Below, piece after piece: positions 13,692 through 62,958 of a stretch of DNA of 64,000 bases; positions within the stretch are counted from its first letter, which is position 1, and every line of letters starts with the position of its first letter. The notes under the pieces are model-generated. The model made no database searches. It was given only the letters and a program-made list of their open reading frames with translations, and had not been told where the DNA came from. Position numbers and translations under genes: made by a program. The stretch spans positions 26,846,001 through 26,910,000 of the forward strand of contig CM119379.1 in the NCBI GenBank assembly GCA_051294905.1, in the 5' to 3' direction. The stretch is from Botryllus schlosseri. Lineage: Eukaryota.

Positions 13692-16600
13692 ATGGTTTTG
13701 AACTGCAGTCAAGAGCCGGTGTGGACAGGTAAAGCAAGATACGTAACGCCAGAAACTCTATCAGAATACGCCCTTAATACGTCTAAACCGAGAAAAGTCG
13801 AAATGGCAGCGTCAAGCATCTACGGAACGTTGCCCCGAGCACCAAAATATCACCGACGGCAAATGAGCGAAGCGGCCATCCCCGTGAAATATCTGACAGA
13901 CCCGGGCAAGCCGAGCGCCACCAAAGAACGAAAGAAGTCTTTCTTGGTCGGACTTAAAAAGAAAATCAGATACGCAGTCGACGGAAAACCAAAGTTGAAT
14001 GGGTCAAGAAGCGATGACATGTGTGGAAGTACGGGGAGTTTATATCACGAAAAAACGCCAATCTCAACTCACAGTGGTCGCAGTAAAGACGATGTCTTCC
14101 GCGCGTACCCTGAAAGCTCATCGCCAAACTCTTCGGCCCCTTCGAGCCCCGAAAGCCGGAGGTCCAGTTTTTCGAGCAAACGCGCGAGAAGGAGCAAAGC
14201 TCGGAGTCACAACACAAACAGAGACAGTTTTGGGAGTATAAGTCCAGAGGAAACTGCAAAGAAATCGAGTGGCACCAACGTGCTCATCGTCGGGGGAGAA
14301 GGTGTCGGAAAATCAGGTTTGTACATTTTATTGCTTTTGGTTTACGAGAATACAGAGACAGGTCGTAAATAATATAATGCCTCTTTATGGGGGTAGTGAA
14401 TATTTTGATGACCTCTTTAGAAATATGCCCCGGAAATGGTGTAGATTCGAAAATTTGATATTCGATCGCTTTCGGGATTATGTCTGCTTTAAATTTGAGA
14501 ATTTGAAAGCATTATAGTTTCCTGTATGAAGAATCATATTCGCGCAAAATTAGCTTAGCGTGAGAGAGAATTTTTCCGAAGAGTCCAATTGTTGATGGCG
14601 AGAAATTTGCGAAATGCGAAATTCTCTGAATCGCCAGAGTTTCTCCCGTTACGGAGATCTAGTTTTGCACACAAACAATTCGACGGCTCATCCGCGACTG
14701 TATAAATCGGATTATTGTGCGTGAAAAGCAAGAGTATTTTTGTCAACAATGTGAAAAGCTGACGAGGTTTTAAATGTCGTGAAAAAAACTCAAATTTTCA
14801 AAACGTGATCTATTCAAAAGATATTAGTTTTGCGGCTTCGACATCTTATTTTAAAATTAGCGTCGTGTCTCAGATTTATATTGCTAAACTGCCACGATGG
14901 AGTTTTTAATCTCCTTGTGTACTTTGTACTATATAGTGCTGAATGCTAACGAATAGCGCAGTAAATAGAATTCTTATTCTATGATTCTCACACCTTTAGA
15001 AGTCGATGCTTATCGCGATAGTGACGTTGTTGGGAACAATTTCGTGCCGCCTCGACATTTCTAGCGGCTGATAAAATCATAGAGGCGTATCATTAGAATC
15101 GGGCCAACATTTATTTGTCTAAGAGTCCCCAAATTCTGGTAAGCCGTCTAAAATCCAACTACGTAAAGCATCTCACGATACGTTGCGTGCGAAAGGTCGA
15201 GAACGCTCTCTATAGTCTGCGAATTAAATATAGAACTCTCGATTGTGGCGAGAGGGTTAATATCGACTAGTAGTCTATCGCGGAACATGATTCGAAGCGA
15301 AACGATGAATCTGGTGATGGCACGGAAGGTAGCTAGCAAAGAAGATTTAAATTCTATTCTAGACTTTGCATCACTGTGTGTTACAAAAACAAGAAATACA
15401 TTGTGTACGAAAAGCTAATCCAGATTTTTTCCTTTGCAGCACTCACAGTGAGATTCCTAACGAAACGATACATCGGCGAATACGCTCCTGAAATCGGTGA
15501 GTTATATTTCACAGATTCATTGCTACTCTAATTACATCTCTCGTCACCAAATTCCCGAAATACCTACGAGTTACTGCTGCCTGATAAGAAACAGTTGGGA
15601 ATTCCGAATGTCAACATTTCGTTTATTGAATAAATGATTCATCGAACCAGCCGCTTATTAAGCGCCCGCATAACTTTGAGACCACGGGATTGTTTGCTCA
15701 CGCATATTTTAAGGATTTCTTCACTGAAATTATGGGATAAAATATACAGTTCTAAACCGTGACTTTTTATGTTACAGAATCGGTTTACGACCAGACGATA
15801 AATCTCGAAGGAAAAGATGTCAACGTTAACATCTGGGACTCCGCGATACCTGAAATTCATCAGGTAAATTGGATTTTATTTGAAAAGAATTCCGACAGTC
15901 TAATATTGGTACATATAAAATGGATATATTATTCAATTGTATACTGAGGTTCTGTACTTCCAAGAGTCTTTATATATAAATAAAAATCGGGATGATTGCC
16001 AAATATAAACCTGTAATTCTAGTGGTGCTGGGCTGATACTCCAATACATTACATGATTACATTATTGAAAGCAACTTCTCACTTTCGACGCGGTTTCGGT
16101 ACGAGTAGACAACTTTGACACTTTCGGTATTTCGAGATGTTTTGTCCGTAAAGGCTGTTATTTGCGCGAATCACGATCGGTTTTTATCAGATGGCTGCTG
16201 TACAACTGCGAATCTCAACGCAAATAAGAACAGCTTCAAGGCGATAGACAAAGACCTTAAAAATACCCGCCGCGCTCGATGACTAACACGCGCGGAATGC
16301 GATACCAACTCTCTCTTGAAGGGTATGCGACTAGCACGCATCGCAACGAGGGTTAAAACCATACAAGAGATTATCTGTGTAACGTAAACTAGTCCCCTCT
16401 GACAAGCGCTGAAAGTTCGCGTGCAAAGTATAGAGATTCGCGAAAGCGATAAAGATTCCTTAGAACAGTCCGGACTGTGAAAAATTTGAAACGTGACTGA
16501 TAAAAGGGACTGTTGTAGGTTCACGGAACTTCCGTATGCAATTGAATACTATTCATTTTGATAGATATATATTGAAATAAACCCGAATATTTTCGGTTGA

Positions 16601-17314
16601 CACTCGTCAGCAACTAGTAGAGAATTGAAAAGAACATTGTATATTAACAATTCTTTCTAATTCTCTTTTCTAATAAAGATAGATGAAAAACAAGCAGTCA
16701 AACTTATCCATTCATCTCTTTTCCAGACTTCAGTCGAACACGAAGAATCCACGAACCTCACCCACTCTCCATCACTGCATTCCGTGACTTCATCTTCTGA
16801 TTCTTGTCATGTGAACAACCGATATTCGAGCGGCAGTTTCGAAGACGAATCCGCTCACGGTCTGTCGAGGAAAAACCGGCTCCGAAAAACCATCAACAAA
16901 ACTATCCGGAGGTTTAGATCCGGAGAAGGGAGCGATACAGACGACGACTCACATCCGCTCACCGAAGCAGAACGCAGACTGAGATGGGCTGATGGATTGG
17001 TTGTAGTTTACAGCATCTGTGATCCAAACTCTTATAAAGCAGCGTGTGATGTCATACGTTACGTCAGAGACACTGAATTCGCAGAGCTCAACCACATTCC
17101 AATCTTATTGCTTGGCAACAAAGCGGACTTACATCACAGGCGATTAGTCGACACTAATGAAGCGAGGGTCGCGGCTTTACAATCTCGTTGCGCTTTTACG
17201 GAGATATCAGTATCGGAAGGATACGAGCCTGTCTCGAACGCCATGAAAGATCATATCAAGACGATACGGAATGCTGCAAAATCGCGATCGAAATCGCGAA
17301 AAATCAGATCATGA
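13692..17314 (+). CDS. RASL11-like: RASL11/RASL12/RERG-family atypical Ras-like GTPase, paralog A, 451 aa; exons 13692-14316, 15440-15496, 15778-15863, 16727-17314
   Basis: G1 VLIVGGEGVGKS|A, then ALTVRFLTKRYIGEYAPEI|E, ESVYDQTINLEGKDVNVNIWDSAIPEIHQ, RWADGLVVVYSI, G4 GNKAD, G5 region EISVSEGY (human RASL11B has EVSVSENY, from memory). Introns are GT-AG with phases 1,1,0. Exon total is 1356 nt = 452 codons including the stop. No CAAX box. Confidence 0.92.
16540..16680 (+). mobile_element. Partial long-palindrome MITE in intron 3 of paralog A
   Basis: CAATTGAATAT...GAAATAAACCCGAATATTTTCGGTTGACACTCGTCAGCAACTAGTAGAGAATTG matches the family at 34875-35225. Confidence 0.75.
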
Positions 17315-20300
17315 ACCGCGATCGATACTACGTGACAATACTGTGAATTTTTGGTTAAAAACCTCTCGTTTTCAAGCGTTCGCTTTTTGAACACTTGCAA
17401 AGTTCCTAGTTCCTAGTAGTGTGCTGTAATTTATGACGACAGTATCGTGAGATCAAGTTTAGAAATTAGTTCTCCGTAGTCAACCTTTTGCGACACGAAT
17501 TCCAATTCGGAATGCTTGCGACTCGACTTCGATTTGTTGTCGGATAATAACCCGGGTGCATTTTGCTTTATTGCTCGACAAACGGACGGTCATCTTGCCT
17601 GAGTTGCTTTTTAACTGCTTTACTTCATTTTCTTGTTCTTTCACTTCGTTTTTTCTTCTTCTCGCGACCCGAATTTTCTATTGTGAAATAATAAAGCGTG
17701 TGGGTCGAAGATCCACTGTTCGATGATAATTTCGAATGTTTGGATGGCTGGATGATAGAGGAATGACAGTTGACGGTTAGACTATAGAGACTGTAGTCTA
17801 CAGTCCTACAGTCTCTATAGTTAGACGATATGAAAGGCTGATTTTGTTCAAAATTTAGTCTCAAGGCGGGCTTCAAGGCTTCAAATAGAGCTTCACATTC
17901 TTGTGACGAGACCGCTACCACGAAGGTTGTCGGTTAACAAAAGTCATCAGGCTCCGGTTGTTTTAGACAACTGTAGCAGCCACGCATTGTCTGCACGAGA
18001 GGATTCGCCTCGTGCCTACTCATAGTCAGCAATTAACAGCAACGTAGTAGTGTTTTGAACTACGAGATTGTTCACAGACCAGGTGTAGAAAACGGAGCAC
18101 ATTATGAAGGCTAACTGCGTTGTCAACTGATTTACGCGGGCTTCACGATCCCATCCATTAGTGTTGTTATCCTTATTTCGTGGGATATTGTAGGTCATGA
18201 GGGTCGGTATGGGTTAGAAAACCATAGCGTCCCCGATTTGTCTGTAGTCTGTACGAATGGATTCCTGTTATGCAATATACTCCTATAGCCACTTATGCTA
18301 CATTGAGGCACCTTTTAAAAGCGAAAGTGGGCCTGTTTGTAGTTAGGCTTGAAGCGAAGCCCTCGTTATAGCTGTCGCTATGGAAACATTCGATAGGAAT
18401 ACAATAGATTGTTGTTGAATTCAAACCTATTTATTAAGGACATTATAGAAAAAGATGAACTTCTCCGTGCACACCTTACCAACTGCCAGATAGTTATTTG
18501 CCAGATGCTCCCACGAGCCCATTGACTTAGCACTAGGCAGCTTTGCGACACCCATCACACCTCCTCTACGCCTGTGGCCTGAGTGCCTGGAATAATATTT
18601 GCTTTCATACGCGTCAATGTCAGGACATTTTATGATTGCTGTGTTGATCGGATGAATCTTCGTAACACCTGCGCTTGTGTTGTGCAGGAATATCAACATC
18701 AGCAGTGATAGGCTTACTTTCAAGACTAGGCTACGGAGGCCGTCTGTTGGATATTGCACGGAAAATTGTGCGGGAATGTGCGCAGAATTCACTCAGTAAT
18801 TTTGTGTTCGGACATTATGGGCTTCTCTAGTTGGCCTAAATGGGGCTGTATATGCCATTGTCTTGACCTCACATAGACTTATCTTAGCTAGCTACCACAA
18901 GAATATTGATTCTGACGGTTATGAACATTTGAAAACAAGTTAATAAATAAGTTAGGAATTAAGTTCAAAAATTCAGAATTAATCTGGAAGCCACATCATA
19001 TCATCAAAAGAGCCGTATATGACTCGCAAGCCTTAGGTTTCAGACTCCTGGTATAGAGTGTGGGCCATACCAGAAAAATCCGCCAGACAGCAAACACCGC
19101 GTTGACCAGCATGGCATTCAAAACAAGACATTTGAAGGCGAAATAATACGACAGTGTCCCCGTTGTCGGTTCACAGGCGAGACATCACATCCGGCGATGG
19201 ACGAGACCATGAAACGGACACGCCTTCTATTGCAAACAATCGCGACGCGCGCTATCGAATGTAAATTGACTTCATCAGCATGACAATTTAGCCACACCGG
19301 CCGAGAGTCGGTGGTCAACAATAGAAAGAGATATATCTCAGCGGATCGCCCGACATTTGAGCATGCGACACAATGAAAAATGACATTTGAGCATGCGGCG
19401 CAACGAAAAACGACGAATGAACAGAAGGCGCACTAATTCAACATGTGTCACTTCAGCCTGTGACATTATAACCCACAACTAACTCAAACAGCAACCCTTC
19501 CCCAAAAATTGAGGCTTACATGAACCCTAGCACTAATCTAGCTCTAATCTCAACAGTAACCAGGCCTAACTTTAACACGCGTTCTCAAGTGTCTCTTGCT
19601 ATTATGTCTCATGCGCATAAGGTCATGGACCGTCTCAGTTAATGTACAACACGAAGTTACTATTTCATGACTTGTTCGGAATTAGTTCGGGAATAGTTCG
19701 CGACTAGTTCGGGACCAGTTCAGTTGTGCAATGCCAGGTATTGCTGATAGCAGACGGGAAAACATATATGACTGAGTGGTTTAATTCCGGAACAAGACGC
19801 CTGTCATATGTGTAGTATAGTGCAGTGCATTGCCCAGTGCCCCCTGACAACTAAATGTCATCAAATGAGACGATCGACTTCTAACTATCTTCTAACACCA
19901 ACATAATCGCATAGTTCTAGCGTCATAGCAGGTATATTCTATAGTTAAATAGTGAGTTTGAATTACCGAAAATGCATAAAACGAGAGACACAGTCTGTGT
20001 AACGTATTTGTTAGAGAGAGAGCGGGACGCAATACCAAGAATCGAAAGGCCGAATGCTTTTCACGGGCATTCGTTGGTATTTTGTTTGTTTACGTGCCAT
20101 TTACGTCACTCGACGGGTCTACCACACTCATTCACAGCCGTTACTGAAGACAAATCCTATTATGATTTAATAATAACCCCAGACGCAAAACAATACCGCT
20201 GCAGCAACTCCAAATTCTTGAGATGTAACCCGATCAAGTCATCTAGGATGTATGCGTGTGATTCGTCATTTGATACCCTTCCCCGACTAACCCAAAACTA

Positions 20301-34874: not shown

Positions 34875-35238
34875 AAGAGCTTCTTGGAGGCACAGAACAT
34901 CAATATACAATTGAATAGTATATTCATATTGAAATGGACCCGAATATTTTCGGCTGACACTCGTCAGGGGTAATCGTCAGCAACTAGTAGAGAATTGGAA
35001 AGAATTGTTGATATACAATGTATTTTCCAATTCTCTACTAGTTGCTGACGAGTGTCAGCCTAAAATATATTCGGGTTCATTTCAATATGAATATACTATT
35101 CAATTAGAATTTCACAATGATATACAATGTTCTTTCCAATTCTCTACTAGTTGCTGATGATTACCCCTGACGAGTGTCAGCCAAAAATATTCGGGTTCAT
35201 TTCAATACGAATATACTATCCGATTAAAATTTCACAAT
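34875..35238. mobile_element. Long-palindrome (foldback-like) MITE with a tandemly duplicated right arm
   Basis: 34908-35105 is a near-perfect inverted repeat with ~95-bp arms. 35119-35238 repeats the right arm. Confidence 0.85.
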
Positions 35239-39235: not shown

Positions 39236-42029
39236 AGTTATGCAAGCCAATCCCAAACCTTTACACCAAAGTGTAAAGATTAGCCAAAAACTGTTAAGTA
39301 GAAGTACTCCGAAAATACAACCATTTAAGTAGTAGAGTACTTGGGCACTGCGATGGAGTAGAAGTACTCCGTCACTGACTACATCAAATCAACACTCACA
39401 GGAATGCTCAGAGCAGCGTTGTGTTCCAGTTTTCTAGCGGCAAGATACGTCTTTCATATCATAGCGCAAGGTGCTCTTGGAAATGAAGTCTACCGCGTGA
39501 GTCCGAAACGAACTGACAATTTCGGACGATTGAATGAAATGTCTGTATATCGATGCCTCGCGGAAAATGTTCACAGAATTTTTTCGGAAAACGCTGCTAT
39601 TTCAATCAAAATGTTGAAGCAAATTAATCTGAAACGATAGACGTAAATCGGATTTCGTAAATTCCACGTCTTGCACGACACTCGTGAGATGACGTACTCC
39701 AGTTTCAGATCAGAGAGGCTTATAGTTGATTTAAAGGCGAGCGTAGCCTGACACGACTGTCAGCACCTCGCCTGCACTTTTTCGTAGTCTAATACCTTGT
39801 AATGCACGACTTTATAAACAAAAAAATACAGATCCCCATTCTCGCATGAAGTAGCATGTGTTACCGTGAAAGTAAAAACGCCTTTTCATTGTGAAGTTCA
39901 GTTTTATTTATATTCATATAATTTCAAAGCACCAAAAGATGGCAATAAAATGAACAGATAGGAAAGAGTCGAACCTAATTGGAGTATATCCTCTCATGCA
40001 GCAGAAATCCACCTTGGCTTAGAGCAGGGGGCTATGAAGAAAATTGAGAAAAATTCAATGTAACTAAAAGAAAGATCTTGATCTTGAGTATCATTTCTTT
40101 GTTGTGCTTTTACATACGGGCCGACGAGTAAGAAATATTGGAATAAGAGGGATACACACTCAATGTAAAATAACAGAGATAATATCAAGTACAAACGATG
40201 AAAATATATTGGTATGCCTCGGTATGTCAGATCGCTGTCCGGAAATCTCGAACGCTGACTATATATAGCAATACTATTGATCACGTAGCTTTGCAAAGTA
40301 GAATATCTGTTGTCCTGAAAATTGACTAGAATCAACTGAAACCGGGAGTTCTTATTCGATCTCTCGAAGTTAAAAAATCCGATATTTGGAAAGCAGCTCT
40401 TCAAGTATGATAGTTTCGCCTTTGATATACTCATAAAATCATGTGTTACGAAACGACACGATGATCGGTCCGCTCGTGATGTCTCTGCTAAATATAGAGA
40501 GACCTTCCCCGAAGCTCGCCTGTCCGGAAAAGTCGTTTTCGGGATTGCGCAACATTGGAGCAGATAGCTCCACAAAACATTTACAAAAACACCATACGTT
40601 GAAGCTGTATAGCTGCGAATTATTTGCCACGCCCGCATAGAGGTCTGGCGTTATTCGTTTATCTATAACGAGGTATTGTGGATACAAAGCCGTAGCCGCG
40701 CGATTGCAAAATACTTTTAAATATCCATGAAAGACAGATTGTTCAGCGCGGGCGTCTGCTATTTTTCATCAAGATCCAGTCGGTCTATGTTTATATCGCG
40801 AACAGTCAAGAATGGAAGGCTCGCGCGCCCAGGTATTAAAGGCGCAGTGGATTGTGAAATCACGATGTTCGTGGAAACAGTGCGCTGGCCCGTTCAGGAT
40901 ACAGAGGTGAACTTGAACGTCGTTACACATGGTTTGTGATTGCATTAAACCTGGACAACTTAATAACTCATATTGAAATAAATCTCAATATTTTCAGCTG
41001 ACAGTCGTCAGGGGTAGCCTATAATCGTCAGCAACTAGTAGAAAATTGAAAAAATACACAAAATATTCGGGTTCATTTCAATATGAATATATTATTCAAT
41101 TGTATATTGGAGTTTTGTACAACTAAGAAGCTCTTCAACTGGATAATTCTAGACTAATTACACTCGATTTTTGTTGTACTAATTTCCAAATCGGAATTTT
41201 ATTCAATTTACAAGTTTTTGCGAATTCAATAATTCTAATTATGATCTAATTTGGAAAATCTGAAAATCTTCCATAGTTGTACAACTCTGAATTATATCGA
41301 TGTAATGAATATTGAATGTTATGCTTGCCAATGGACTAGCATGCGCTCATTGCAGCAGCATTTTTCTCTCTCGCTCTATAGTTGTTGTAACAGTTAGTTA
41401 CAACACGTTTGGCCGCATGATAATCCCAGAGCGCTGTTGGTGATAAAATAGCAGCAGTGCGGTAAGAGCTTGGCAGACTGTGTTAAGTATCTGTTGCTGC
41501 CGTTTCGACAGCATGTGTGCTTGAATCGATTAATCGGGTCCTGAAAAGATCATTCTAGCAAAACTCCAAACCCGAACATATAGAAAAATACACATCAAGT
41601 TGTGGAACCCACTTGGTATACTTATCCCGTTTCTAGATTTTACAAAGCTAACTAAACCACATTGACATCAGGATAAGCTGTTTTGAATGAGAAAATTAAC
41701 CGCCAAGCATGCATATTTTATGACCACTTCGGGTTCGTTCAAGTCTATCTATCGCGCGTACAACCAAATCCGGCGAATGAGCGTCACTATTGAGTGGTTT
41801 GTTTTCGAGCACTTCAGTTGATATCGCATGCTGCTAAACTGCATCTCTACAGTTTGACATTCAGTCGCAATCGAATCCTTTACACGTGGAGAGGCTAGAT
41901 CGAGAATATGCGACACATTCTTATCCAACTACGACCACCAATATTAATTGTTTATCTCTGTACGAATAACGCCATTATAGGAACAGGAAGTTATCTATTT
42001 TAACACCGACTCATGATATACGTATATAC

Positions 42030-44832: not shown

Positions 44833-44864
44833 GTATAACGCATAGACACAGACACCGATACGTA

Positions 44865-47800
44865 TCACAATGAAAGGTTTCGTTTATGCGTAAATCCCCC
44901 TGAGACTGTGCGAACGATAGCTTTGATCTTGGCGGGTTTTGAAGGAGTCTTTGATCTATATATGTCCCTTATCACGTCATTAAAGACTTCGGATATTCTT
45001 TCAAAGTCTCGCGACACCGATAGCTCCACGCAGGCCTTGCATCCATTCTCGATCGCGAAAGAAACGGGTGAGTTCCTCTCGACCCTTCTCCTGTGACTTA
45101 AGTCTGATTTGTTGCCGATCAAGAAAACTGGCAAGAAGGAATCGCTGTCGCGCGTAGCGTGGCCTCGCACCGTCTGTCCGGTCGTGTATCTTACGATGTC
45201 GCGCGCGCAATCGTAAGATTCTGTATCGCAGATGCTGTAAACCACGATCACTGCATCCGCCCAAGCTAGCCTCATATCCATCTCGTTCCCGGCTTTTCTG
45301 TTGTTGTTCAGCTCCCTCGCGTTTCCTTTTTTCTTTACTGGCTTTCTCTCGCATACGGGCGATGAAGTCATGGAAGAATCCTCTTCGAAGCTGCTGTAGG
45401 AAGTTCGGTTGTCGTAGGCTGACGACGTGGAAGAGGTGGATGTTCGGCTCGAAGAGTTCGCGAATGAGAGGAATTCGGAGATGTCGAATTTATCGAGGTC
45501 CTTCTCCGGCTGCTTCTGAAAAGAATTTAGATCGTTAAAGCAGAAGCAAAAAAAAGCCTCATCCGCAGATGTCTGTAAATTTGTTGCAAGATGTCTTCTC
45601 GAAGCTATACATACTTGATTTCATTGCAAGGTTGATACAGGGGTTATTTCGCACAGGTTTGATGACAATTTCACTGAGAAAATGGTCTCAACATATCTCA
45701 AAACTAACTCTACTTCACGAAATCCAAAGTTAAAATGCAAATAGTGACTAAAAACCTAAGCTCATTGGAAGTAGTATAAAAAAACATGAATACTTGAGTA
45801 AGTATTGCAAGTAGGCAACATCAAAGTACATGTACTCCGTTACTGACCACCTTTGGGTAATTGTGTTGTAGGTCTCAAAACAAATTAGTATTTTCCCACT
45901 GTAAATGGAGTTAAAGGCTCCATCAATGCTAGGTCATTGTTCTTGCTTCGCCCAACCCCGTAAATAGAAACCTCATCGCGAAGTGACAAGCAAATCAGCA
46001 GATGAGATGCCTCATAAAACAAGAGGAGTTTCATTTGCCAACTGCGGACATCGAAACTATAACGAATTGAACACTTCTACCACTTGTCGTTATGTTGCCA
46101 CCAGCAAAACCTTACTGCCTAAAAAATGAAGTTTTTCAGCTTTTTTAATCAGTGCAGGAACGAGTTGGATCCGACACTGACGCACCACTATAATTACTAT
46201 GGTTTCGCAGCAGCAGCGATCGTTCAGTACTCATATATAACTTGGGGATATATTTAGAAATAGTGCGAAATAGACTTAAGTTTATTTGGGAAAGTTGATC
46301 GCAAATAACCGAGTTTCGCACTCGCAGTCTCATACAGATACCGAAAGTTTCGCCACTATCCAACGCTATTTATATTTTGGATAGATTGATTTTTTTGAAG
46401 CTTAGAAGTGAATGAATTTTTCGCGCGAGCATGGAATACAATGAGTCATATTCACACAGTAATGTAGAGATATCAATCATTGCGTATGATGCTACGATAA
46501 CGAATGGAATCGGACACATTACATCGCTTGACTGATTGACAAGAGGTTGGAAAACCCCAATTTAGCCCACCTTTCTACTCCGTACTGACTATTTTGTAAT
46601 AATGCCTTTGAGATATTTTACGTTGCGCGTTTCATTCCGTTGATTTTGCTTATTCTGCTTCGATGCAATTTCGTATCTAGTCATTCTTGGTGTCAAATTT
46701 AATTTATCGTGCCGAGCCATCTTCACGTCATAAGATACATCGATAAAAAAAACTTATCGCAAATTTCGGAGGATTGAAGAGAGATTTTCATGATGCGACA
46801 TCAAAACCAGAATTTGCGGTCAAGAATGAGGACCGAGATAACACTTGTGATTGACAGACCGATAATACGGAGATAGATTTCATGGGATTCTGAGATCCTT
46901 TGCTTAGTGATGACATTAATGCGTTGCTATGCAGGGTTTCCCAACATGGGGGCCTTTTTCAGGGGCATGAAAATATTTATCATCTCCAAGTCTTATCCAC
47001 TATAAGAAAATTACTATATTAAAATTGAAAAAAACATACGATATAGTACAACAATAAGCCACTTCTTCATTTGAGTTTACTTTCTTTGTTTTACTTTTAG
47101 ATTTATTAATATTAATATTTACACAATGTCTACCCTACCTGCTAAAGAAAGAAGTGAAAGTTATATTAAGCTTGGCTTCGCATATCTACATGACAAATGA
47201 TGTACTATCATGATTATTATGTTGTATTTATATCATTCACTCATTATAACTATAGCGGTTACCGTATAAACCCCTTTTTTAATAGAATAACGTTTCTAAT
47301 TTTTTTCAAAAGGTTATGAAAATAGGAGGCCAGAGAAAGCACTTTCACCGATTGCTACTAATAAAATGTTACTTTGAAATATGCTTAGAATAAAAATGTC
47401 ATCTCACTGAGGGGAAAGAGACATTCGATACCTAATTGTGGTATTCGGATATCCAGCGTATCATTGCGATAAGATTTCGTAACATCGCGGGATAGATTGC
47501 TGTCGCATACGCGCGTCATCCATGTAGGGGCGACATGTTATGAGTTTCGGTTTCCAATCGCCGATGAAACGCGTTTGTAGTGGATAATCGTTTTTTTTCT
47601 TCAAGTCACATTGACAGGGGTTCTCAAACAGTATCAGTTCATTAATATTTTCATCAATTCAAAACACCACAAACCCGCGATAAAATGAAAAGATAGGAAG
47701 GTGTCGAAACGACTTGAAATAGTCTTTGAAATCAGACACCCTCATTTTAAAACCGCAACCCTTTCGATTTATCTGCATGAATGGCGTTACCCTTGATGTA

Positions 47801-56800: not shown

Positions 56801-59800
56801 AAATGATAATAGGTAACTGTCTTCCAGCAATTGACTTAGATCAGCGCCTCTTGACCTTTCCTACGAACTTGGCGAACCCTTACACTAATCTACAAGCCTT
56901 CGGCTAAACCCGAATTTTCGACCTTCACAAAACAAAAATCCCCCACAGTACACATATAATACATTAGGCTACTGTGCAAGACCGGCGAACAAAATGAACT
57001 GTGCATCAACGACAGTGTTAAGAGAACAAGACAAGTAAAACCATGACTTACACGCGAAAAATGAAGATTATAATAAATATTTACTGCTAATTAGTGTGAC
57101 CTGTGCTGTATATGAGTATGGTTTGTAACTTGAACCCCCGAGACTGACTCCGCGAACCCCTGGGTTTCACGTGAACCCCAGTGAAGAGCAATCGACTCAG
57201 ATGGTTCAGATTCCATGGTCAAACGCGAATGTTGAGTCATCATTAATAACGGCCGGTTGTCGCATTTTCGGCGCGAATAATAGAACTAGTCGAAAAATAA
57301 CGGATTATCACGAAACAAGCACATACTTGAGTTGACGATCATCTAACTTTTGGTTTTTTGAGTGGTTCTAGTTCTAGTTGGGAGTTTTGAAAAGTGAGTA
57401 GTCCTAGCTCTAGACGAGAAATTTGAGAATCCAGTACTGTACAAGTCTGCCTACCTGAAGGATGTGAGGGATTCCAGAGTCCCAAATATGCAACGTAACT
57501 TCTTTGCCGTCGATCGAGATCACGTGGTCGTAGATAGACTCTGCAAAAAACTTGCAAATCTATTTTTCTGATTACGACTAGACGCAACGTAAGAAAGAGA
57601 AAGGCTAAGCCGGTGCAGTGTTTACAAATAGTCTGCGCATCGTCTATGTGGGAAAACATATAAAGCTGGAACCTTCTAATACGAGACGGTTTTAATACAG
57701 TTTTGTGCTAGGATAAGTACGGAGGTGTTTATTGCAAAACAATAATCTCGCTGTTACATCAACAATGATAAAATGAATTATTGCGAATGAGTCACAGATT
57801 ACAATTGGCGATACGTGAGTCAACCGCCCCGTTCGCTGTTTAGATGTTATCTCGCGTTTCTCAAATATACGCTGATTATGGATTTAACACCGCTAGCGTT
57901 AAAATAGCGTCGAATCACAACTGTGAGCAATATTTTGGGTATAGAGATGCTTTTCTAAATCGTTAGGCGTACAACCGAAGGTTTGCCTCTTGAAATAATC
58001 ATAAATTTGGAACCACGAATACGAATCACGAAATACTAGTCAGTGCTCGAGATTAGGTGACCACGATCTGACATATCGACCTCGCCTTCCGTTACATGCA
58101 ACATCATTTTCATCGCTTGTTCTTTTTATGGTATCTTCCACGACTTCTCATTCAGTATGTAATGTGCAATGTGCATGCCTCTTCGTTATATGCTCTAGGC
58201 CGGGGTTCGCCGGAGGTCAAGACACACTGGTTTGCAGTAAATATCCAATTATCAACTATCATCTTTTAGTTTTGTGTCAAATTCGTGTTTAATGGTTTTG
58301 TCCTTTTACGGGTGTTTTTAATATACAATTCATTTTGCACGCAAATCCTCGACAGTACTGCATTATAGATGCGTATACTGTGGTAGGTTTTCATTTTTGT
58401 GACTTGACGAAAAATTTGGGTTCGCCGAAGTCTTGTGCAGATTAGCGCAAGGGTTCGTCGCGTTAATGAAGATTTAAAAAAAAACACTGCTTTAAGCCAA
58501 AGTGGGTGTCTGATTTTAAATGCTACTCCAAATCATTTCAAGTACTATCTTTTCATTGCATCGAAATCTTGTAGTGTTTTGAATCGATAGGGTTTGGGTG
58601 CGGGTTTAGGATATGATTAGGGTTAGGGTTAATTCGTGACTGAATGTGCCACTGAGTGGAGCTCTTCCAATTTTGCGTGACAAGCAAGGAATTGACAAAA
58701 TCCAGATTACGAAAGCTTATGGGGGGTGACGTAAACAGCGCGACGTGTAGAATTTAAAGCCAGAATTCCAAAGCCTGTTGCCGAAAAATGGCGAAGTAAA
58801 AATCAACAGCGATTTACCACCAGTCGATCGTGCCGGTTTATAGACATAAGTTCCCGTAATTGAGCAAGTTGTCGCGAACTGTGGAATGTTGTCGCGTAAT
58901 ACAATTCTGTTGTTAAAACTACATCGTTACATCGTCCTTTGCCAAATTGATTTCCATTTGAATCTTTGTTGATATGCTTATTATTGTGCAGTTAAGTATG
59001 GATAAGGGGCACGCGGAAAGTTTACGCGTTACATAAATTATACTGCACACAAAGATTGTAGTCTTGAGAGCAAATTCAAGTTATCTATTCAAATTCTTGT
59101 TTTGGTAATGGAATGAACGACTTGATTGCGATATTTGTTTTGATATCATTGCTAATGACGCGATTCTCTGTCAGGCATGCGAAGGCGCGGAGACGCGTCG
59201 CGCTAAAGTAGCTCGACACGCCGGTAACAAGCGCCTCCTCGCCGCAAGTATGAGGCGTGTGCAATGGAGATAGGCCAACACATTTCTCAATCTTACCTTC
59301 CAGCGCAAGTTTGTTTATCAATGTAATAAGGTCAACTTAAAGTGGCGCTAAGGACAACACGAGAAGCTATATATCAAATCGCTAAAACTCTGATCAAATC
59401 ACAAACACTGCATTCTTTGAAAATCGGGTTTGAGAAGGTTCAAGCTTGGATACTATACTCACTGACACCAAGACATTGGATAATGTAGTGTAATTTGCAA
59501 TATCGTCGGGATGATTTCTATATAGTTTTCATCGTATACGTTTATGTACCATGTAGGCTTAATTCAGTATATTTAAAACAGTAGTATTTTAGCATAGTAT
59601 AGTATAGTACAGGGGTCTCAAACTCAAATTTGCTTCCTAGTTTTTGATGACGTCGCTGGCCGCAGCATCAATAATAGGGGTAGGCCTATTCGCGGTCTTT
59701 CCAAGTAGGCAAGTAGGCCTTATTTAACGGGACCTTGCAGAATGACATTCCACACCCAACGTGAAAATGTGATTAACTACGTACAAATTCACGCCTGGCA

Positions 59801-62800: not shown

Positions 62801-62958
62801 ACCAGCGTGTCTTGCAACACGTCGTTAGTCGTTACAACGACCACTACAGCATGTATACTGCAACCCTTCACGTCTTTGCCAAGAAAATAAATCGGACTTA
62901 CCCGAGTTTGAGGCATATTCGCCGATGAATCTCTTCGTGAGATATCTGACGATCAACG
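44865..62958 (-). CDS. RASL11-like: RASL11/RASL12/RERG-family atypical Ras-like GTPase, paralog B, 5'-partial; exons 62902-62958, 57455-57540, 44865-45515; exon 1 with G1 not found in the window
   Basis: Exon 2 ALIVRYLTKRFIGEYASNS|E (57 nt). Exon 3 ESIYDHVISIDGKEVTLHIWDSGIPHILQ (86 nt). Exon 4 KQPEKDLDK...RLAWADAVIVVYSI...GNKSD...ELSVSRD...RNLSL*. Exon 2 and 3 lengths and all intron phases are identical to paralog A, and all boundaries are GT-AG. Confidence 0.9.
46932..47345 (+). mobile_element. Charlie-type hAT fragment with a transposase N-terminal relic
   Basis: Left end CAGGGTTTCCCAAC. 47126-47200 reads MSTLPAKERSESYIKLGFAYLHDK*, like the KRKYxESYLxFGF start of Charlie/ZBED5 transposases. 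The right boundary is uncertain. Confidence 0.55.
48816..49150 (-). mobile_element. hAT-Blackjack-like MITE, third copy
   Basis: TACGGTTACCATATTTTGAGATCCGGGAAAGAGGACAC start and AAAAGAGGACA repeats. Aligns with 34300-34673. Confidence 0.6.
49865..50085 (+). mobile_element. 5'-truncated tRNA-SINE family copy
   Basis: Aligns with 51300-51517, including the 3' end ACAAAAAT...ATGTCCTATTCC. Confidence 0.75.
50815..51085. mobile_element. Long-palindrome MITE, near full-length
   Basis: Both arms are present around a short central loop. Same family as 34875-35238. Confidence 0.8.
51167..51517 (+). mobile_element. Full-length tRNA-derived SINE with a (TTTCC)n tail; core resembles the MetaSINE-type central domain
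   Basis: A box TAGCGTAATGG, B box GGTTCGATCC, then GGTCAGACCAAAGACTTG...ACTTCCCTGCTTGGCGCTCATGCATT, and a CCTTTCCTTTCC tail. Three further partial copies occur in the window. The Meta-domain match is from memory. Confidence 0.8.
51800..52140 (+). mobile_element. 'AATTAGA' family MITE
   Basis: Right TIR GAATTATCTAGTTGTCCAAGTCTG is intact and the body aligns with 11318-11674. Confidence 0.7.
53965..54300. mobile_element. Charlie-type MITE containing a (GT)n microsatellite
   Basis: Ends CAGTGGTT and AGAACCATTG, flanks GTTTAGGG / GGTTAGCG (6/8). Confidence 0.55.
57455..57540 (-). CDS. RASL11-like: Paralog B exon 3 (G3-containing, 86 nt), missed by the ORF track
   Basis: Acceptor TTTTTTGCAG, (E)SIYDHVISIDGKEVTLHIWDSGIPHILQ, donor GTAGGC. 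Aligns without gaps to paralog A exon 3. Confidence 0.92.
59610..59905. mobile_element. Charlie-type MITE, degraded
   Basis: Left end CAGGGGTCTCAAACTC, right end GTTTGGGGACAGTTG, flanks resembling GTA(T/G)AGTA. Confidence 0.5.
60588..60960 (+). mobile_element. 'AATTAGA' MITE interrupted by a long-palindrome MITE (about 60670-60895)
   Basis: CAGAGTTGGTCAAC left end, then palindrome-family sequence, then the MITE body resumes at TTCCGAATTAGAA. Confidence 0.65.
62902..62958 (-). CDS. RASL11-like: Paralog B exon 2 (57-nt exon, switch I), missed by the ORF track
   Basis: Acceptor CTTGCTTTTCAG, (A)LIVRYLTKRFIGEYASNS, donor GTAAGT. Same length and phase as paralog A exon 2. Confidence 0.93.

Follow-up and report, generated by a model that had tools for sequence, protein, structure and literature searches.

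Two Ras-like genes, here called A and B, lie tail to tail within the window, by which we mean the whole 64 000-nucleotide stretch of the Botryllus schlosseri genome that was analysed (contig CM119379.1, positions 26,846,001 to 26,910,000). The positions of their exons and of the elements discussed below are collected in Table 1. The last exons of both genes match the Pfam Ras profile PF00071 (A, 49.6 bits; B, 39.0 bits; cut-off, 21.6 bits), which the full-length orthologs also carry. In both paralogs, and likewise in the orthologs, the last exon opens at its acceptor with an insert, as a preliminary description of this DNA had claimed for the two paralogs. The region between the two GTPase genes contains a 214-aa open reading frame (39994-40638, minus strand) that has no Pfam match.

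Table 1. Positions of genes A and B and of their elements in the window
Feature	Position	Strand	Remarks
Gene A, Ras-like, four coding exons	13692-17314	+	Start codon probable
Gene A, coding exon 1	13692-14316	+	Long Ser-rich N-terminal extension and P-loop
Gene A, P-loop GGEGVGKS	14292-14315	+	Within exon 1
Gene A, exon 2	15440-15496	+	Helix α1 and switch I region ALTVRFLTKRYIGEYAPEI, Thr35 replaced by Glu; RNA and translation
Gene A, exon 3	15778-15863	+	β2-β3 and degenerate G3 IWDSAIPEIHQ; phase-0 end
Gene A, last exon	16727-17314	+	Insert, α2, G4 NKAD, G5 SVS, basic tail, stop
Gene A, insert proper (exon residues 1-76)	16727-16954	+	Predicted disordered; no counterpart in RERG
Gene A, Ser/Thr tract of insert, SPSLHSVTSSSDS	16766-16804	+	Alignment A1
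Gene A, core motif R-x-S-x-S-S-Φ-[DE]3 (RYSSGSFEDE in A)	16820-16849	+	Inside the 13-mer 16814-16852
Gene A, basic block of insert, SRKNRLRKTINKTIRRFRS	16865-16921	+	Alignment A1, ortholog model
Gene A, acidic patch SDTDDD	16931-16948	+	3' of the basic block
Gene A, retained helix α2 PLTEAERRLRW	16955-16987	+	Ends at Trp of RWAD
Gene B, last exon	44864-45515	-	Insert (45515-45264), C-terminal GTPase half (NKSD, SVS), stop
Gene B, insert motif DNRTSYSSFEEDS	45375-45413	-
Gene B, exon 3, ESIYDHVISIDGKEVTLHIWDSGIPHILQ	57455-57540	-	86 nt; phase-0 end
Gene B, exon 2, ALIVRYLTKRFIGEYASNS	62902-62958	-	57 nt

Three RNA runs (X1, X3 and X24) were informative for gene A; a further run, X21, contributed no reads. 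In X1, a spliced contig of 1768 nt (record 1) covers 13700-14313, 15437-15495, 15777-15860 and 16724-17500, and an 847-nt contig from X3 (record 9), which belongs to a separate study, contains the last two junctions in identical form. Furthermore, 21 raw reads of X24, a run that is on record as RNA-Seq, span the joint 15863|16727 from 16 start positions. This joint and the GT..AG borders of all three introns were read after the reported cut offsets had been applied; the donor of exon 1 (14316|14317) is supported by RNA joints, and the two introns that flank exon 2 are both GT..AG in the contigs of X1 and X3 and in the raw reads of X24. No joint within the last exon was reported from the contigs of X1 and X3 or from the reads of X24, and the depth of X24 over the insert (~47-49) equals that over exon 1 (~40-50). 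Because the RNA joins 15863 to 16727 and gives no sign of an acceptor further downstream, the mature mRNA of gene A includes the insert, and the earlier claim that no internal acceptor skips it holds for this gene.

Translation of gene A probably begins at the ATG at 13692 rather than at that at 13803, giving a protein of 451 aa. The upstream ATG is in frame, 37 codons 5' of the other, and the N-terminus that it would add (MVLNCSQEPVWT...) matches the N-termini of the Styela protein P0001 and of P0151. At 16923 the RNA runs have a G/C polymorphism that changes exon residue Gly66 to Ala, the residue found there in Styela clava; a T/C polymorphism at 16936 is synonymous. Intron 3 contains a pair of 30-nt inverted arms (15926-15955 and 16523-16552) that are 567 nt apart. 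A piece of ~100 bp in the same intron (16550-16651) is very abundant in the genome, with >2800 first-look candidates and 59 scored matches. The intron 3 element reaches enormous depth in the RNA runs and looks like a MITE or another family of non-autonomous transposons; a second copy is present in the window at about 34926-35207.

The last three exons of gene B are inside the window, and its P-loop exon (GADGVGKS) and N-terminal exon are located ~5 and ~7 kb past the window end (G000:C9, ~26914738-26917398). The gene spans >26 kb, with introns of ~12, 5.4 and 5.8 kb. The assignment of the joint 57455|45515 rests on canonical splice sites, the reading frame, equal exon sizes, homology and the RefSeq model of Styela clava. 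Exons 2 and 3 measure 57 and 86 nt in both genes, and both third exons end in phase 0; the acceptor ttcttttcag stands directly 5' of the last exon of gene B, and the B-type RefSeq model of Styela clava reads ...IPAMLQ|KSSEKPE..., in agreement with the predicted junction. The gene B protein, as well as the basic tail encoded by the last exon of gene A, is without a CAAX box.

From the end of the G3 exon to the Trp of the (R/A)WAD motif there are 86 codons in gene A (16727-16984) and 84 in gene B (45515-45264); translations of 16727-17314 (plus strand) and 45515-44864 (minus strand) agree with the lengths given in the preliminary description. Counted instead from the Ala of D-S-A up to the Trp, the interval in gene A is 92. 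The corresponding interval between G3 and Trp is 11-21 residues in RERG, RERGL-like, RASL11 and RASL12 proteins and 105-112 residues in Styela-type proteins, as counted by regular expression. Among 183 collected relatives, all but one of those outside the ascidian set have 11-21 residues. The exception (P0007), with 65 residues, is a fish contig with a retained intron. When RERG (PDB 2ATV) is aligned with the Styela A ortholog, two blocks result, and 93 residues of the query are left unmatched just after D-[TS]-A; the Pfam Ras profile begins at exon residue 84 in A (profile position 68) and at residue 81 in B, that is, at profile position 67-68.

The inserts of A and B both contain 20% Ser. 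In each of them, as the preliminary description had noted, a Ser/Thr run comes before a 13-mer, and basic residues cluster after it (RKNRLRK in A and RKPVKKK in B). Downstream of the insert, helix α2 is retained, with E80, R84 and W87 invariant in alignment A1. Used alone as a protein query against its own genome, the insert matches itself only. Having no other genomic copy, it is neither a portable module nor a repeat.

Judged by their sequences, genes A and B are RERGL-type atypical Ras-like GTPases that form a tail-to-tail tandem of ascidian-specific paralogs. Their nearest named relatives are the 'ras-related and estrogen-regulated growth inhibitor-like protein' of amphioxus, sharks, teleosts and birds. 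A profile search returned the RERGL name across animals for proteins of 199-271 aa among the best 120 of 868 hits, and no tunicate name occurs among these best 120. In the IQ-TREE phylogeny, the deep nodes of which have only moderate support (85-93), the ascidian clade groups with the vertebrate RERGL-like sequences (93/90), and amphioxus and protostome RERGL-like sequences join them in a wider group (85/90), whereas RASL11 (RASL11A/B, 100/100), RASL12 and RERG are found on the other side of the tree. The position of A and B is thus inside the RERGL-like group, and not with RASL11B, which served as comparator in the preliminary description. The positions of the introns are also shared with this group: in L010, a fish RERGL-like contig, a GT donor in phase 0 follows DSP after three codons and corresponds, at nearly the same place, to intron 3 of gene A; a second intron, behind EYGDI(G), corresponds to intron 2. 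The RERGL-type proteins of amphioxus, fish, sharks, birds, molluscs and arthropods have in common with A and B the sequence VRFLTKRFIGEY, the WADG..VYSICD motif, degenerate G2 and G3 (WDSP and DPCS types) and the absence of a CAAX box. However, they are compact, with ~200-270 aa and 11-21 residues between G3 and Trp. The compact form was not found in the ascidian proteins, which have 451-559 aa (A, 451 aa; Styela, 523-559 aa), 84-112 residues between G3 and Trp, a loop of 70-95 aa and an N-terminal extension of ~200-250 aa. To our knowledge, RERGL-type proteins are almost unstudied. One survey of Ras effectors excludes them for their sequence deviations (PMC8163975).

The G1, G4 and G5 motifs are intact in both proteins (GGEGVGKS, NKAD and SVS in A; GADGVGKS, which is encoded outside the window, NKSD and SVS in B). 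The canonical switch residues are absent: Thr35 is replaced by Glu in A and Asn in B, Gly60 by Ile and Gln61 by Pro. Gly12 is likewise replaced, by Glu in A and Asp in B. Aligned against RERG, the G2 and G3 sequences are YAPEIES and WDSAIP in A, and YASNSES and WDSGIP in B. In the loaded-spring mechanism of Ras-like GTPases, Thr35 and Gly60 sense the γ-phosphate. Because Thr35, Gly60 and Gln61 are replaced, the "switch II" of A and B is unlikely to be a canonical switch, and a canonical GTP/GDP switch with GAP-assisted hydrolysis seems unlikely in these proteins. The placement of the loop in an effector/GAP-binding switch, as originally proposed, is doubtful for the same reason, Thr35, Gly60, Gln61 and Gly12 having already been replaced. 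Non-ascidian RERGL-like sequences share the switch degeneracy, so that the degeneracy predates the loop.

In an exhaustive HMMER search with the last exon of gene A as query, no more than five proteins aligned across the insert. In Styela clava, LOC120333761 (523 aa) is of the A type and LOC120333760 (559 aa) is of the B type, both being annotated as 'uncharacterized protein'; the two genes bear consecutive numbers and are adjacent on the same 18.7-Mb contig. In another species, a transcript-like contig of 1961 nt (L006) contains a full-length open reading frame of 528 aa that includes the insert (P0151), and a further insert-bearing relative (P0002) comes from a marine-biofilm metagenome. Additional A- or B-type copies are P0003, P0004, P0184, P0023, P0008/L011 and L012, and the orthologs of gene B are P0005, P0004, L011 and L012. 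The reading frame of the insert is open and conserved in at least six A-type and at least five B-type sequences, and in four genomic contigs a polypyrimidine-AG acceptor stands directly 5' of this frame. Both types occur together in Styela clava, in SRR25569784 and in the SRR10746996/7 pair, which was taken as one species. The A clade (100/99), the B clade (99/94) and the two clades together (100/98) are supported in the IQ-TREE analysis. Styela clava and two other assemblies have both types, and the divergence of A from B preceded that of the species. These relatives mark the organism of the window as an ascidian related to Styela. These sequences support the earlier proposal that the insert predates the A/B duplication.

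The long N-terminal extension is common to A and B and conserved, with the motif (K/R)xLSF(L/I)xGLxxK(I/V)K.A in A (13803-14290) and RPLSFIANFASKVKNAFE in the upstream exon of B (L009, window-equivalent about 71222-71398); it also predates the duplication, and the RERGL-like proteins of other animals (199-271 aa) lack it. Between α3 and β5, a second extra loop, shorter than the insert, is found in other A-type orthologs (EICRQGSNLDLAASR) and in B types (QTVRGHA...); gene A of the window lacks ~15 residues of this loop (17045-17110; A1 columns about 160-195).

The preliminary description had also claimed a conserved motif inside the insert. The 13-mers NNRYSSGSFEDES of A (16814-16852) and DNRTSYSSFEEDS of B (45413-45375) are identical at seven of 13 positions without gaps, and seven or more identities were reached in 5.8% of 2000 composition-preserving shuffles. 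With p about 0.06, this match was rejected as evidence standing alone and is convincing only together with the orthologs. When all GTPase sequence was removed and the A-type and B-type insert profiles were compared by hhalign, the match (P = 4e-5) fell precisely on the shared motif. The motif R-x-S-x-S-S-[FLI]-[DE]3 is present in ten of the 11 A- and B-type sequences, a set that includes P0184, L011 and L012 in addition to alignment A1, and the eleventh reads RFSYSSGTEEE. The motif claim is therefore confirmed, by the orthologs and by the profile match.

In alignment A1, exon residues S22, S23, S26, R32, S34 and S37 (A numbering) are invariant across both types. The A-type sequences have the conserved blocks S[LM]MSVTSSG, SNRFSxSS[LF]E[DE][DE], SRKN[KR]LRxTINKTIRR[FW]RSxEGS, the acidic patch and TEAERRLRW, and the B-type sequences have FDISExLSMTS, YDNRxSxSSF[ED][ED], a Lys-rich stretch, (E)[LV]NNN and NEMxxR[LV]xW. 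The basic block of A hardly varies in four of the other five A-type sequences; P0003 has diverged further. The identity at aligned insert positions in eight ortholog pairs is 59, 54, 73, 44, 72, 70, 47 and 51%, compared with 65, 59, 66, 54, 70, 60, 56 and 56% in the GTPase core of the same pairs, in the same order; the insert has more indels than the core. Such conservation is the pattern expected when purifying selection acts on motifs embedded in a disordered region, and does not resemble neutral low-complexity drift.

As a sequence pattern, the S-S-Φ-[DE]3 part of the motif resembles CK2-type sites: in ten of the 11 sequences, both serines have Glu or Asp at +3. Consensus-level matches to nuclear localization signals (NLS) are a conserved RK-x11-RRFR in the A type and Lys runs, variable in sequence, in the B type. 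Loose patterns of the CK2 and NLS kind frequently arise by chance in sequences rich in Ser/Asp/Glu or in Lys/Arg. The sequence of the basic block differs between A and B, and the two loops may thus not work alike. None of several other patterns (14-3-3 mode 1, βTrCP DSGxxS, FFAT, LIR, B56 LxxIxE and pLxIS) fits the invariant positions of the motif.

AlphaFold models were made of the A and B orthologs of Styela, and the structural statements made here refer to these models. In the A model the core has pLDDT >90 and residues 65-160 have values of 45-55; a low-confidence, amphipathic helix covers the basic block (pLDDT about 48), and α2 is kept (pLDDT >90). In the B model the core again has pLDDT >90, residues ~75-145 have values of 38-56, and a long helix (residues 146-176, pLDDT 59-70) extends from the Lys-rich part into α2. 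The top Foldseek matches of the ortholog models are RASL12 (3C5C, TM 0.92) and RERG (2ATV). The insert is thus predicted to be an intrinsically disordered loop between G3/β3 and the retained helix α2.

The explanation that we favour, and consider reasonably probable, is that a disordered loop predating the A/B duplication has been kept by selection and now works as a docking or regulatory module that carries short linear motifs. Its structural and evolutionary part, which concerns the loop of a non-canonical GTPase, can be stated with high confidence. Each protein consists of a long disordered N-terminal extension, a predicted nucleotide-binding core and a disordered loop of 70-95 residues. 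The last exon begins with the codons of this loop, which in gene A are a constitutive part of the mRNA. The Ser/Thr tract, the R-x-S-x-S-S-Φ-[DE]3 motif and a basic segment are contained in the loop, plus the acidic patch in A, and the basic segment is predicted to form an amphipathic helix in A and a Lys-rich helix continuing into α2 in B. With the canonical Thr35/Gly60 spring unusable, the switch II region may have been free to accept such a loop.

How the loop would act can be outlined with less assurance. The acidic end of the motif may create CK2-type sites, in which Ser has Glu or Asp at +3; phosphorylated serines of the motif could then create further sites for acidophilic kinases (CK2/CK1 type) upstream in the tract, giving hierarchical phosphorylation, which we see as the likeliest mechanism. 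The negative charge beside the basic helix might gate its engagement with a partner, a membrane, importin or the G domain itself. We regard phospho-gating specifically as a tentative proposal, somewhat more apt to be wrong than right. Bolder still, and decidedly improbable in our judgement, is the idea that a nucleotide-driven switch has been replaced in situ by a phosphorylation-driven one, in a pseudo-GTPase whose phospho-loop would toggle exposure of the basic helix and thereby localization or partner binding.

Against a docking or regulatory module stands the possibility that the loop is a neutral, functionless low-complexity expansion, tolerated since the switch II of the RERGL type was already non-functional. 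The simple composition of the inserts, rich in Ser in both genes, the numerous indels among the inserts of orthologs, the predicted disorder and the degenerate switch residues are all as expected for such an expansion. However, in ortholog pairs the aligned positions of the insert show about the same conservation as the GTPase core, blocks such as RKN[KR]LRxTINKTIRR[FW]RS hardly vary in five of the six A-type sequences, and the motif has survived in both paralogs since an old duplication; we hold neutral expansion to be unlikely. That the insert is an artefact of annotation or reading, such as a retained intron or an acceptor truly placed further downstream, was worth considering, the first reading having been made without RNA data and the insert beginning precisely at an intron boundary. 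The acceptor at 16727 is nevertheless the one used in spliced contigs of two studies and in raw RNA-seq reads, which refutes the artefact for gene A, and an independent transcript contig of another species includes the insert, the frame of which is open and conserved in both types as described above. We therefore give an artefact hardly any credence.

A further alternative is that the loop serves mainly for localization, its basic segment being an NLS or an amphipathic helix that binds membranes or calmodulin, with the Ser/acidic part secondary. Since A and B have no CAAX box, they need another means of targeting, for which the basic segment is a candidate; the RK-x11-RRFR pattern of A resembles a bipartite NLS, B has its Lys runs, and the ortholog models predict a helix at the basic segment. 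On the other hand, conservation between A and B is highest in the Ser/acidic motif and not in the basic block, and the helix of A has low confidence. A mainly localizing loop is, in our estimate, a rather unlikely competitor of the docking or regulatory module.

With respect to the origin of the insert, the extra sequence is bounded on one side by the conserved phase-0 intron and on the other by the point where α2 began ancestrally. It is consequently compatible with the shift of the acceptor proposed in the preliminary description and with growth of the exon at its 5' end alike. Both fit equally well, and we put the chances of the two as roughly even.

The closest solved structures by sequence are those of RERG (2ATV, E = 1e-23) and RASL12 (3C5C, E = 2e-21), with fold TM values of 0.84-0.92. 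RERG keeps the canonical DTAGQE and Thr35, whereas the ascidian proteins do not, and both RERG and RASL12 fall outside the tree group formed by the ascidian and RERGL-like sequences. RASL11B resembles A and B in belonging to the same broad RERG/RASL subgroup, in its RWAD motif and in a somewhat lengthened switch II (~20 residues), but RASL11 keeps a DTPG G3 and forms a separate clade. A KRAS with a tandem duplication in switch II (PDB 6PQ3, structural match rank 26) has extra residues in the same structural element; that case, however, is a ten-residue duplication in a canonical switch, while A and B have an evolutionarily fixed loop of 70-95 residues in a non-canonical GTPase. The RGK GTPases (Rad/Gem/Rem) are atypical Ras-like proteins with non-canonical G2 and G3 and with disordered extensions that carry phospho-dependent and calmodulin-binding motifs. 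They offer an analogy only: their regulatory segments are N- and C-terminal and not within switch II, and no close relationship of RGK GTPases to A and B appeared in our searches. In the literature on switch II or insertions in RASL11 and RERGL, and on RERG in ascidians, we found no description of the loop.

To call the insert the best candidate for a new system in the window, as was done initially, is too strong, for it is a lineage-specific disordered insert in a known family, and one already contained, though without remark, in the RefSeq models of Styela clava. The loop of A and B does not reveal a new kind of system, but is an unusual, lineage-specific elaboration of a known family, and a clean case of an exon boundary that has gained coding sequence. 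It indicates that the switch II position becomes structurally permissive once the Thr35/Gly60 spring has been lost, and that evolution can load linear motifs there. The short conserved motif and the basic helix would provide a mutable handle on what non-switching Ras-like proteins do.
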